Positions 16,825-20,659 of a stretch of DNA of 64,000 nt are shown piece after piece. Under the pieces are notes generated by a model that searched no databases, was not told the DNA's origin, and worked only from the letters and a program-made list of their open reading frames with translations. The stretch is from sequence record LC727698.1. One strand, 5' to 3'. The translations under genes and the position numbers were made by a program. The number at the start of each line of letters is the position of its first letter. Positions within the stretch are counted from its first letter, which is position 1.

Positions 16825-16857
16825 AACTACTATGGATAGGACCTATCCATAGTAGTT
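16825..16857 (+). repeat. 33-bp near-perfect palindrome
   Basis: AACTACTATGGATAGG-a-CCTATCCATAGTAGTT. Confidence 0.85.
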
Positions 16858-18845: not shown

Positions 18846-19181
18846 ATGGATCTTTGCAGGATTTTAAATAATGAACTTATGTTTTGCAGAAATCGTAGGA
18901 ATAAACTCTATTATAGCCTACGGCAATTGGATAAAGTCGAGATCCCTGCAGATCCTGCAGATTCTTTACTTATTTCCAGCATAAAAATGGATATAGAACA
19001 GCTCCAATCGTATAAAGATGCTATATCCGAATGCAGTAGACTCGAACAACGTATAATCTGTATAGATAAAACTATGCAGTATATCCGTCGGTATTGCAAT
19101 CATAAGTTTGTGTATCACAATACTAATTATCATACAAATACAGATGCAGAAAAATGCATTTATTGCGGATTAATAATTTAA
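18846..19181 (+). CDS. hypothetical protein, possible C-terminal metal-binding motif
   Basis: CNH...CIYCG at C-terminus. Confidence 0.55.
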   Translation: MDLCRILNNELMFCRNRRNKLYYSLRQLDKVEIPADPADSLLISSIKMDIEQLQSYKDAISECSRLEQRIICIDKTMQYIRRYCNHKFVYHNTNYHTNTDAEKCIYCGLII

Positions 19182-19182
19182 T

Positions 19183-19653
19183 ATGGCATATTTTTCAACT
19201 AAGAGATTTGGACCTATTTCTACTGGCCATCGTCAATGGAAAGATACGGGTCATTGCAGTAGAATACACGGCTATGGAAGAACAGTGAAGATTGTTTTTT
19301 CTGCTACTACATTAGATGATAAAATGTGGGTAGTAGATTTTGGTGGATTGAAAGATTTTAGGAAATGGTTGGAAGAACAATGGGATCATAATGTTTTAGT
19401 TGCATCCGATGATCCTAAGTTAAATATCCTTAAACAAATGGAACAAGAAGGTCTAGTTAAATTAAATATAATGGATGTTAAAAAAGGTCATGGTCCCGGA
19501 ATAGAAGGTTCATGTAAGCATCTGTTTGACTATTTAAATCCCATCATAGAAAAACATTCTGGCGGAAGATGTTGGGTCCATAGTATAGAAATATGGGAAC
19601 ACGAAAACAATTCCGCTATATATGAAACGTATAAGTCAACATTTAAAAGATAA
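19183..19653 (+). CDS. second QueD/PTPS-like protein
   Basis: GHRQW...HC..IHGY, WVVDFGGLK, WDH, WEHENNSAIY. Confidence 0.8.
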   Translation: MAYFSTKRFGPISTGHRQWKDTGHCSRIHGYGRTVKIVFSATTLDDKMWVVDFGGLKDFRKWLEEQWDHNVLVASDDPKLNILKQMEQEGLVKLNIMDVKKGHGPGIEGSCKHLFDYLNPIIEKHSGGRCWVHSIEIWEHENNSAIYETYKSTFKR

Positions 19654-19656
19654 ATA
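19649..19656 (+). promoter_or_regulatory. late promoter (GATAAATA) for hsp20
   Basis: Overlaps the upstream stop codon. Confidence 0.6.
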
Positions 19657-19660
19657 ACAT

Positions 19661-19731
19661 TAGTATTCCACGAGGAATACTATACAACGAGTGCCATATT
19701 GGGCTCACACTATATCTTGCGTAAAGGAGAT
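19661..19731 (+). promoter_or_regulatory. candidate ROSE-like RNA thermometer
   Basis: Three hairpins; the last pairs AUCUU(G)C with GGAGAU over the SD with a bulged G. Confidence 0.5.
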
Positions 19732-19736
19732 TAAAA

Positions 19737-20168
19737 ATGCAAAAACATGTTATAATGTCATCTAACCTAGCTAATTATAGATATGCACTAGGTGCAACTG
19801 ATTTACTTAATACTATTACTAATGAACTTAGTAGCCAGAAGTTTCCTCCCCATAATTTGATAAAGAATGCAGACGGTAGCTATTGTCTTGAATTAGCTCT
19901 TGCCGGTTATGATAAATCCGAGCTAGATGTTTATGTAGATAGCAGAGAACGACTGTTAGTAATAGAAACAAAACCGGAACGAATTTTTAAAACTGAAGTA
20001 GAATACGAACACAAAGGTATTTCTAGTAAAGATTTTTCTGTCAAATTCAGACTTGTAGACGATCTTATAAATATATCTTCGTGCGGTATGAAAAATGGCA
20101 TTCTAACAATAAAAATTCAACCGCCAAGTCCTGCAGAATCACAACGAAAAGTAATTGATATAGAATAA
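19737..20168 (+). CDS. small heat-shock protein (Hsp20/IbpA family)
   Basis: FPPHNL, ELALAGY, Y.HKGIS...F...F, NGILTI, C-terminal I.I motif. Confidence 0.92.
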   Translation: MQKHVIMSSNLANYRYALGATDLLNTITNELSSQKFPPHNLIKNADGSYCLELALAGYDKSELDVYVDSRERLLVIETKPERIFKTEVEYEHKGISSKDFSVKFRLVDDLINISSCGMKNGILTIKIQPPSPAESQRKVIDIE

Positions 20169-20175
20169 TGTTTAC

Positions 20176-20207
20176 AAATAAAAAGCTGGTATTCCAGCTT
20201 TTTATTT
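20176..20207 (+). terminator. rho-independent terminator
   Basis: AAATAAAAAGCTGG-tatt-CCAGCTTTTTATTT. Confidence 0.85.
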
Positions 20208-20218
20208 TGCTATATAAC

Positions 20219-20247
20219 TTGACGACACTGTTTAAACATATATAATA
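20219..20247 (+). promoter_or_regulatory. sigma70 promoter of clpS
   Basis: TTGACG-17-TATAAT. Confidence 0.8.
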
Positions 20248-20282
20248 ATGTGTATCAATTACGATCAACTTGGGATTTAAAA

Positions 20283-20585
20283 ATGACTGTAAAGGTAGCT
20301 AATAAAGTTGAAACTTCGTCTACTGTATTTCAACCTAAGAAATATAATGTAGTTTTCCACAACGATAACAAAACCACTATGGAATTTGTTATGCAATTGT
20401 TAGTTTATATATATGACTACGATGCATCTAGCGCATACAATACAATGATGGAAGTGCATGAACGCGGTGCAAAGATTGTAGGCAGCTATACAAAAGAAAT
20501 TGCAGAATCGAAACAGTCTAAATCTGTTCAACTTGCTATTAACAACGGTTATCCTGATTTTAAAGTAACTGTAGAAGAATCGTAA
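20283..20585 (+). CDS. clpS: Clp protease adaptor ClpS
   Basis: Y.V.FHND..T.MEFV, M.VH..G, EIAE.K; ATG 20283 preferred because 20250 lies only 2 nt after the -10 box. Confidence 0.92.
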   Translation: MTVKVANKVETSSTVFQPKKYNVVFHNDNKTTMEFVMQLLVYIYDYDASSAYNTMMEVHERGAKIVGSYTKEIAESKQSKSVQLAINNGYPDFKVTVEES

Positions 20586-20597
20586 TACAGCAAAAAC

Positions 20598-20617
20598 GGG
20601 GGTAGACACCTGCCCCC
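20598..20617 (+). terminator. GC-rich hairpin after clpS
   Basis: GGGGGTAG-acac-CTGCCCCC, weak U tract. Confidence 0.5.
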
Positions 20618-20659
20618 TTCCCTATTATAATAAATAAAGCATATAGGGATATAAGAATT

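Follow-up and report, generated by a model that had tools for sequence, protein, structure and literature searches.

A diverged ROSE-type leader candidate behind a late-type promoter word at the hsp20 gene of a PA5oct-like Pseudomonas jumbo phage

Introduction

Whether a phage can bring a late chaperone gene under the control of an RNA thermometer is the question raised by the short region upstream of hsp20 in Pseudomonas phage sp. 30-3, a PA5oct-like jumbo phage (Wroclawvirus). The hsp20 gene encodes an IbpA-like small heat-shock protein (sHSP), and its leader was analysed within a stretch of 64,000 nucleotides (nt) of this phage (LC727698.1, 124001-188000), hereafter the window, whose coordinates are used throughout. 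ROSE elements contain a labile helix that covers the ribosome binding site at low temperature and opens as the temperature rises. A sequence-only reading of the window had proposed such a ROSE-like thermometer at 19649-19739, in front of a late phage sHSP.

Only three phage RNA thermometers have been counted, namely those of lambda cIII, of SPbeta blyA (fourU) and of a sigma70 gene in a gut phage (a fourU leader) (PMC11182007). Like the hsp20 leader considered here, they lie in phage mRNA leaders for which temperature control has been proposed; unlike it, they are alternative-structure switches or fourU elements that control lysogeny, lysis or sigma genes, and none of them is of the ROSE type or precedes a chaperone gene (PMC11182007). 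In our literature search, no paper connected phage hsp20 with an RNA thermometer, and no ROSE-type element before a phage gene came up. The comparisons presented below argue that a diverged ROSE-type leader behind a late promoter is real at this locus, and they bear unequally on the separate matter of whether this copy still responds to temperature.

The hsp20 leader belongs to a family of phage and bacterial leaders

An IMG/VR search with the window protein alone returned no hsp20 relatives, and a word-based protein search found one relative only, at 36% identity, whereas an alignment-based scan of IMG/VR recovered 80 further hsp20 loci. The leaders of S-SM1, P-RSM4, S-CAM3 and an unrelated phage contig from Logan contain an exact U(U/C)GCU word a few bases before AGGAG. 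U(U/C)GCU was located 3-10 nt before GGAG in 66 of the 79 phage hsp20 leaders with enough upstream sequence, where 5.5% would be expected (25-nt window). From 5' to 3', these leaders share a promoter-like word (TATAAATA, GTTAAATA or TATAAT), a first hairpin (hairpin I), an A-rich spacer, the sequence C-U-Y-G-C-U, a loop of 4-7 nt made of U and A, the Shine-Dalgarno (SD) sequence AGGAG, 4-9 nt and the ATG. Hairpin I consists of an outer stem interrupted by a bulged G, followed by CC, a loop such as UUCG or GAAA, and GG before the stem closes. In hairpin II, CU(C/U)GCU pairs with AGGAG and its G is bulged. Leaders with both hairpins are common to about 70 marine phage hsp20 genes.

To capture this architecture, a covariance model, R1, was built from a trimmed seed of 26 marine phage leaders, from which the window and its close relatives were excluded; RNAalifold on the raw MAFFT alignment had yielded no structure, with the loops misaligned. 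On the 64-kb window, R1 gave a single match, at 19689-19732 (21.1 bits, E=6.2e-5), which covers the full length of the model, and the next candidate had E=2. The single match on the 287-kb PA5oct genome is the same leader (E=8.9e-5). R1 also matches 69 of 85 other hsp20 loci at E<=0.01, as well as 32 of 42 cellular loci at E<1e-4; most of the latter come from marine Alphaproteobacteria, Pelagibacteraceae among them, and their contigs reach 310 kb. Here and below, counts over related sequences are counts of non-independent events.

The window parse of hairpin I, with its four outer pairs, bulged G19693, CC/GG and 5-nt loop (GAGU-G-CC-AUAUU-GG-GCUC, -4.2 kcal/mol), matches that of 58 distinct relatives. 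Further downstream, AUC-UUGCG-UAA-AGGAG-AU fits the family word together with the AUC...GAU extension of its stem, except for the last letter of the word. Placed side by side, the window reads AUC-UUGCG-UAA-AGGAGAUUAAAA-AUG and the leader L058 reads GUC-UUGCU-UAAU-AGGAGAUUAAAAC-AUG. On these comparisons, the window leader is very probably a member of the hsp20 leader family, in its UUGCU subfamily. The sequence-only reading had singled out a bulged hairpin at 19689-19706 and an SD complementarity, AUCUU(G)C/GGAGAU at 19714-19731, with G19719 unpaired and the word UUGCG. Both are present, and the bulged G and the pairing register that it proposed are exactly those conserved in the leader family.

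Two observations concern the breadth of the family. The E-values of R1 range from 1e-5 to 1e-10 in alphaproteobacterial loci, including single-cell genomes of Pelagibacteraceae, and reach 1e-20 in four loci filed under other taxa. Eight IMG/VR loci (L054, L062, L071, L074, L075, L084, L093 and L100) have no U(U/C)GCU and instead carry cAGAC-G-CUU-AAG-GAG-GUCU, in which a bulged G lies within the SD-masking stem, together with a different upstream hairpin, GCGGAGUC...GGAUCCGU. This variant group may represent a second solution to the same design.

Covariation supports hairpin I and a stem extension in the UUGCU subfamily

Pairing was counted in the model-fitted alignment. In hairpin I, five of the six pairs have changes on both sides and 99.5% of the cells are paired; no shuffle or slid register approached this support. 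An independent parse by regular expression gave a similar picture, pair 2 being U-A in 29 and A-U in 27 leaders, and pair 3 being G-C in 42 and A-U in 14. In hairpin II, 99.7% of the cells are paired and the sole change is from C-G to U-G (45 vs 22). The 6-nt word, including the G that bulges, is invariant in the family while the spacer and the loop vary.

The two forms of the word differ in the length of the stem. Leaders of the UUGCU subfamily have two added covarying base pairs (bp) at the foot of hairpin II, the first being U-A in 25, C-G in 4 and A-U in 4 of 36 leaders and the next position being canonical in 28 of 36, whereas the same two positions pair at chance level in the UCGCU leaders (9/46 and 10/46). 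The extension was found in 17 of 21 UUGCU leaders and in none of 44 UCGCU leaders, such that the weaker wobble accompanies the longer stem; this association may trace back to a single ancestral event. Across the family, the probability of SD pairing exceeded that for shuffled spacers by a modest margin only (0.92 vs 0.71), and the difference was significant in no more than 3 of 58 leaders.

The family resembles the short ROSE-type leaders of Pseudomonas ibpA

At its curated thresholds, Rfam does not recognise the family. The Rfam model ROSE_3 matches 14 of the 20 tested IMG/VR phage leaders exactly at the leader, with 19.6-33.4 bits against a threshold of 43, and four cellular members with 23.2-34.9 bits, also below the threshold; a Novosphingobium homologue carries a canonical ROSE above it (56 bits). 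The ROSE_3 consensus comprises a stem, a bulged G and CC...GG in hairpin I, and ACUcGCuG...aGgAG in hairpin II. Rfam ROSE_3 (RF02523) apparently corresponds to the short ibpA thermometers described in Pseudomonas (Krajewski et al. 2013, PMC3669281). By the ROSE_3 matches and the shared architecture, the family is therefore a diverged, shortened branch of these Pseudomonas ibpA short ROSE-type leaders (PMC3669281); the phage proteins, too, are IbpA-like. Because the marine leaders are matched below the threshold only, the ROSE models of Rfam appear to miss a large marine branch.

The window leader shares several features with the Pseudomonas short ROSE (PMC3669281). Both lie within the 5' untranslated region (UTR) belonging to a gene for an IbpA-type sHSP and comprise two hairpins over ~45-60 nt; in hairpin I, a bulged G precedes CC...GG, and hairpin II opposes C-U-Y-G-C to AGGAG, with a bulged G, a U-G wobble and a lower C-G pair closing the core. 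They differ in that the window promoter is a phage late-type word instead of a sigma32 promoter, the word is UUGCG, and an extra 5' hairpin precedes the module. The SD hairpin of the window is also 2-7 kcal/mol weaker than that of the Pseudomonas elements, because the upper stem with its G-C clamp is missing. The window and the E. coli ibpA element (ROSE_2, RF01832), both in front of an IbpA gene, have the same core register, in which CUC-G-CU(G) faces (C)AG-GAG, but the E. coli element is longer, has more hairpins and a core of -4.6 kcal/mol, and is not matched by R1.

R1 does match another site in E. coli K-12, on the minus strand of the ibpA-ibpB spacer (GCUC-G-CC-GUCA-GG-GAGC, 16.3 bits, E=0.01). 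The hairpin at this site shares with hairpin I of the family the stem, the bulged G and the CC/GG layout, and the match may be due to chance or to a motif shared among ibp leaders.

The leader follows a late-type promoter word

The claim of a late promoter in front of hsp20 was borne out. The word GATAAATA, which equals the T4 late word TATAAATA with G as its first base, is located immediately upstream of the leader. Seven of its eight copies in the window are on the + strand, directly upstream of genes on the + strand. Of its 32 copies in the PA5oct genome, 23 fall outside coding sequence, and each of these 23 is followed within 100 nt by the start of a codirectional gene; the corresponding figures for comparison words with other first letters are 5/50 for AATAAATA, 2/25 for CATAAATA and 2/38 for TATAAATA. 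According to the mass-spectrometry notes of the PA5oct record, the genes behind GATAAATA mostly encode virion proteins, and they include those for baseplate wedge, baseplate hub, tail fibre, tail sheath, tail tube and many 'structural proteins'. Judging from its placement, GATAAATA is a real promoter-type word of PA5oct-like phages, of the late class. The description of hsp20 as a late phage sHSP likewise agrees with the Pfam HSP20 domain of its product and with the late-type word that it has in common with virion genes.

The T4 rule places the late start site at an A ~6 nt after the late promoter word, and the base 6 nt downstream of the GATAAATA copies is usually A. The hsp20 transcript is thus predicted to start at ~19662, the second base of the first hairpin. 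As with the gp55-dependent late promoters of the T4 type, an 8-nt A/T word precedes an A by ~6 nt upstream of virion genes, and the PA5oct record (NC_071039.1) annotates gp346 as 'late sigma factor', as in the T4-type late system; dependence of the word on this sigma factor is a prediction. Unlike T4-type late promoters, the first base is G. TATAAATA itself was considered as a late promoter here and rejected, as it is depleted (9 vs 19.8 expected) and not intergenic. One RNA contig covers 19417-20333, and the summed depth of the assembled contigs is higher over hsp20 than over the QueD-like gene upstream; the assembled RNA contigs over 19417-20333 reveal no transcript start.

Although the promoter word is shared, the leader is atypical of its class. 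Among 28 late leaders, that of hsp20 is the longest (80 nt, compared with a median of 24 and 58 for the next) and the most structured (-18.5 kcal/mol, compared with -6.9 or weaker). The whole leader folds better than shuffled sequences (z = -2.76) into three predicted hairpins, the last of which holds AGGAG. The first of them, also noted in the sequence-only reading, has nine perfect pairs and an ACGA loop and is absent from 79 other hsp20 leaders; by this comparison, it is a lineage-specific hairpin outside the ROSE-type module. Given the predicted late start at ~19662, this stable hairpin would lie at the very 5' end of the transcript. Stem-loops of the ompA type at the 5' terminus stabilise mRNA, and the hairpin resembles them in having <=1 unpaired base at the predicted 5' end, a likeness of position. 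The 83-nt intergenic region has four variable sites in 10 Wroclawvirus genomes, all of which fall in loops or linkers (P ~0.06), two of them (19671 and 19672) within the loop of the 5' hairpin. The features of the region are listed in Table 1.

Table 1 Features of the hsp20 leader and its surroundings in the window
Feature	Position	Strand	Description
Late-type promoter word GATAAATA	19649..19656	+	Overlaps the stop codon of the QueD-like gene; orientation- and intergenic-specific
Lineage-specific 5' hairpin	19661..19682	+	9 perfect bp, loop ACGA; -10.0 kcal/mol at 37 C
Family hairpin I	19689..19706	+	Stem 19689-92/19703-06, bulged G19693, C19694-G19702, C19695-G19701, loop 19696-19700
Spacer between hairpins I and II	19707..19713	+	Predicted unpaired, A/C-rich; differs in length and sequence among family members
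Family hairpin II (SD hairpin)	19714..19731	+	Pairs A19714-U19731, U19715-A19730, C19716-G19729, U19717-A19728, U19718-G19727, C19720-G19726; bulged G19719, loop 19721-19725; word UUGCG 19717-19721; SD AGGAG 19725-19729
hsp20, IbpA-like small heat-shock protein	19737..20168	+	143 amino acids; Pfam HSP20 E=2.9e-10; E. coli IbpA alignment
Terminator-like hairpin	20180..20209	+	AGCTGG-TATT-CCAGCT, then T-run; read from sequence
Strong sigma70-like promoter of clpS	20219-20246	+	Promoter scan

A different arrangement was observed around another late promoter. At 134977-135020 of the PA5oct genome (NC_071039.1), outside the window, a perfect 8-bp helix (GUCUCCGU / ACGGAGAC, duplex -12.5 kcal/mol) brackets the GATAAATA word of gp275, with its 5' arm before the predicted start and its 3' arm formed by the SD region. 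Translation of gp275 would then be possible from late transcripts only, as for T4 gene e or I-TevI.

A proposed role for the leader

Taken together, 19649-19736 would comprise the promoter and the ~75-nt 5' leader of a late hsp20 mRNA. Marine phages and marine proteobacteria have short ROSE-type leaders in front of their IbpA-like hsp20 genes, and the module at 19689-19731 is homologous to these and similar to the Pseudomonas ibpA thermometer (Rfam ROSE_3). In the cold, CUUGCG would pair with the SD sequence AGGAG, with G19719 bulged, and hide the ribosome binding site; as a weakened copy, the module would give a modest, or lower-temperature-shifted, thermal tuning of Hsp20 synthesis late in infection. 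The comparisons above establish the class of the promoter, the homology of the module, the covariation in hairpin I, the conserved complementarity and, in relatives, the covarying base of hairpin II; we infer the transcript start, the temperature response and the remaining thermal tuning. Taken as a whole, with its function included, we regard this explanation as evenly poised between being right and wrong, and thermosensing by this particular copy as having at best even and perhaps slightly lower chances. The weak hairpins could suit cool-water hosts; in a phage of P. aeruginosa, the weakness of the hairpin suggests at most a mild or lower-temperature effect. Hsp20 may act as a chaperone for virion assembly, as had been proposed in the sequence-only reading. 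The simplest history would be that the gene and its leader were captured together from proteobacteria.

The SD hairpin is weak in this copy

A substantial body of results weighs against thermosensing by the window leader, and most of it concerns hairpin II. At 37 C, the SD hairpin has a stability of -0.7 kcal/mol in the bulged-G register and -2.0 kcal/mol as a 5-bp stem (-2.6 and -3.5 kcal/mol, respectively, at 25 C). These values are outside the repressing range of the working Pseudomonas thermometer hairpins, -4.1 to -7.6 kcal/mol (PMC3669281), and weaker than the E. coli ibpA core obtained by the same calculation. The SD hairpin is missing from most minimum free energy (MFE) folds, and the partner of the SD shifts with the chosen 3' boundary; most folds prefer a rival helix, UUGCGU (19717-22)/AUGCAA (19737-42), of -3.3 kcal/mol, which masks the AUG. 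The complementarity to the SD is in no excess over shuffled flanks, 67% of which are equal or better, and it ranks 41st among 151 PA5oct genes. Accessibility of the SD is average among the 82 window genes, and the SD is predicted to be 60-75% unpaired at 37 C.

The sequence of the word points in the same direction. The window has UUGCG and not U(U/C)GCU: the last letter is G in all ten Wroclawvirus genomes, compared with U in 65 of 65 distinct relatives. This change removes the top U-A pair of hairpin II, and the same G gives the word an alternative partner, the start codon. In the Pseudomonas short ROSE, the core has flanking G-C pairs on either side; the window retains the lower one, C19716-G19729, but the upper G-C clamp is absent and the loop begins directly after C19720-G19726. 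Moreover, Rfam gave no family at E<=10 on 19000-20600, and RF00435 and RF02523 gave no match at E<=10 on the whole phage genome, although E. coli ibpA scored 100.4 bits with ROSE_2 (RF01832) as the positive control in the same scan mode. Covariation among the phage hsp20 leaders, which had been suggested as a check, was found in hairpin I, while the core of hairpin II, one strand of which is fixed as the SD, shows hardly any; the 10 Wroclawvirus genomes, with 98-100% identity and four variable intergenic sites, are too similar for covariation to appear. The notion of a ROSE-like thermometer thus stands as far as a conserved ROSE-like leader family is concerned (R1, E=6.2e-5), and it is weakened by the word UUGCG, the weak hairpin and the lack of an Rfam match. 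With nothing but this window to go by, we would have rejected a thermometer, and the significance of the SD pairing comes from the comparison with relatives only. Within the family, hairpin II is weak throughout, with a median of -1.7 kcal/mol and -0.8 kcal/mol for the UUGCU leaders, and the window value is typical of its subfamily.

Alternative explanations of the leader

The weakness of hairpin II is what would be expected of a vestigial ROSE-type leader. Its architecture would have been passed on along with the gene and the switch lost in this lineage, leaving the SD accessible at every temperature that the host meets and Hsp20 made constitutively late; the main role of the stable 5' hairpins would be to shield a highly translated late mRNA from decay that depends on the 5' end. 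We consider this explanation unlikely on balance, though it is the most serious of the alternatives. The degenerate UUGCG word, the very weak SD hairpin and the largely unpaired SD described above fit it, as do the strong SD followed by an A-rich spacer and the extra hairpin exactly at the predicted 5' end. The arginine required for self-repression by IbpA is a lysine in the window protein, such that both halves of the bacterial control look eroded. On the other hand, the other UUGCU members are equally weak (-0.7 to -1.8 kcal/mol) and their word is strictly conserved, and weakness alone therefore does not imply loss of function. No variation occurs among 10 genomes over the 30 nt of 19707-19736, a weak argument (P ~0.24), and only three of the 82 window genes have a larger predicted change in accessibility between 25 and 42 C. 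The latter measure gave no response for the E. coli positive control, and because of this miss the thermodynamic calculations are unable to decide the function.

The leader may instead be an operator for protein feedback, to which phage Hsp20 or host IbpA binds and represses translation. Aggregating or unassembled proteins would titrate the sHSP, so that the leader senses the protein load, a mode of control that could coexist with thermosensing. There is a precedent in E. coli, where IbpA represses its own mRNA through the thermometer-type 5' UTR, a mechanism that is conserved among gamma-proteobacteria (PMC10474464). Phage Hsp20, itself IbpA-like, has an aromatic residue where IbpA has Y34, and a protein-binding site would be in keeping with how strictly hairpin I, bulged G included, is conserved. 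Arg93, which is needed for self-repression and whose replacement by lysine (R93K) abolishes it in E. coli (PMC10474464), is retained in three cyanophage homologues and in the homologue P0002 on a Logan contig. The window Hsp20, however, has lysine at this position and valine at that of Arg97, both of which are needed for mRNA binding in IbpA. Self-repression is therefore less likely in this phage, although host IbpA could still act, and we regard feedback as an improbable account of the leader. It was also observed that the RNA word and the protein residue at the R93 position are both altered in this lineage.

Far less probable still is translation restricted to late transcripts in the manner of T4 gene e. 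In read-through transcripts, AUAACAU (19654-19660) would pair with AUGUUAU (19746-19752) and close the initiation region, and the late transcripts, which do not contain the 5' arm, would be translated. The 7-bp helix is present in the MFE structure of 19654-19760 from 20 to 50 C, and PA5oct gp275 seems to use the same logic, with an 8-bp arm upstream of its late promoter pairing with the SD. Yet the helix at hsp20 is AU-rich, covers neither the SD nor the AUG, and does not survive a shift of the 3' boundary; in AT-rich sequence, chance is likely to supply a 7-mer complement within 100 nt, and the conserved family module would be left unexplained.

Chance hairpins without function in an AT-rich intergenic spacer would account for SD pairing that alone is no better than in shuffles and for unstable folds, but this reading is scarcely credible and can be set aside owing to the R1 match, the only significant one in the 64 kb and in the 287-kb genome, to which the outlying position of the leader among late leaders and the fold z-score (-2.76) can be added.

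Implications of a ROSE-type leader in phages

Beyond this locus, we tentatively propose, with slightly less than even confidence, that phage IbpA-like hsp20 genes carry a co-transferred ROSE-type switch in hundreds of marine cyanophage records, in pelagiphage-like contigs and in this jumbo phage. The virus would set the late output of the chaperone by temperature or by feedback from free chaperone, with weak hairpins tuned to cool marine hosts. If true, viruses would have their first thermosensor of the ROSE class, and it would be a host stress-sensing cis-element that travels with an auxiliary gene, a clean case of a regulatory RNA transferred together with its gene. If the family works like its bacterial relatives, chaperone synthesis gated by temperature or load would be common and conserved among marine cyanophages and in a group of Pseudomonas jumbo phages that are candidates for therapy. 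How the strength of a hairpin determines its response range could also be studied in the many natural variants of the family: UCGCU, UUGCU with its compensating stem extension, and UUGCG. For annotation, PA5oct-like phages gain the late-promoter word GATAAATA, and the covariance model locates the leader in cases that Rfam misses.

Genomic context of hsp20

The 1.6 kb surrounding the leader match LC727698.1 with 100% identity; for ten other Wroclawvirus records, among them PA5oct, the identity is 98-99%. The Hsp20 protein is 100% identical across 11 Wroclawvirus records and has no close relatives outside Wroclawvirus; it is ~35% identical to the Hsp20 of T4-like cyanophages, and a homologue is present in 498 phage records. 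The gene sits in a run of metabolic and proteostasis genes comprising nrdAB, thyA, folE, queD, clpX, the gene for ribosomal protein S21, a second QueD-like gene and hsp20, followed downstream by clpS, the gene for an Fe/Mn superoxide dismutase, ftsH, clpP and clpA.

The terminator-like hairpin downstream of hsp20 would close its transcription unit. It was not listed by the consensus terminator scan, and the summed depth of RNA contigs drops past ~20170, which is weak evidence. In the RNA sequencing contigs of two runs (X1 and X2), the A-run between the SD and the ATG (19732-19736) has four A instead of five, which could be a strain difference or slippage.

The proteostasis set at 17424-43522 is unusually complete for a phage. 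Apart from clpX, S21, hsp20, clpS and the Fe/Mn superoxide dismutase, it includes genes for an FtsH-interacting membrane protein, ftsH, clpP, a small chaperonin, a DnaJ-like protein and clpA. Several of the proteostasis genes follow sigma70-like promoters (20219-20246 and 20603-20631), whereas hsp20 follows the late word. Between folE and queD, at 16825-16857, there is a perfect 16-bp hairpin with a 1-nt loop and without a T-run, which is possibly an intercistronic site for processing or stability.

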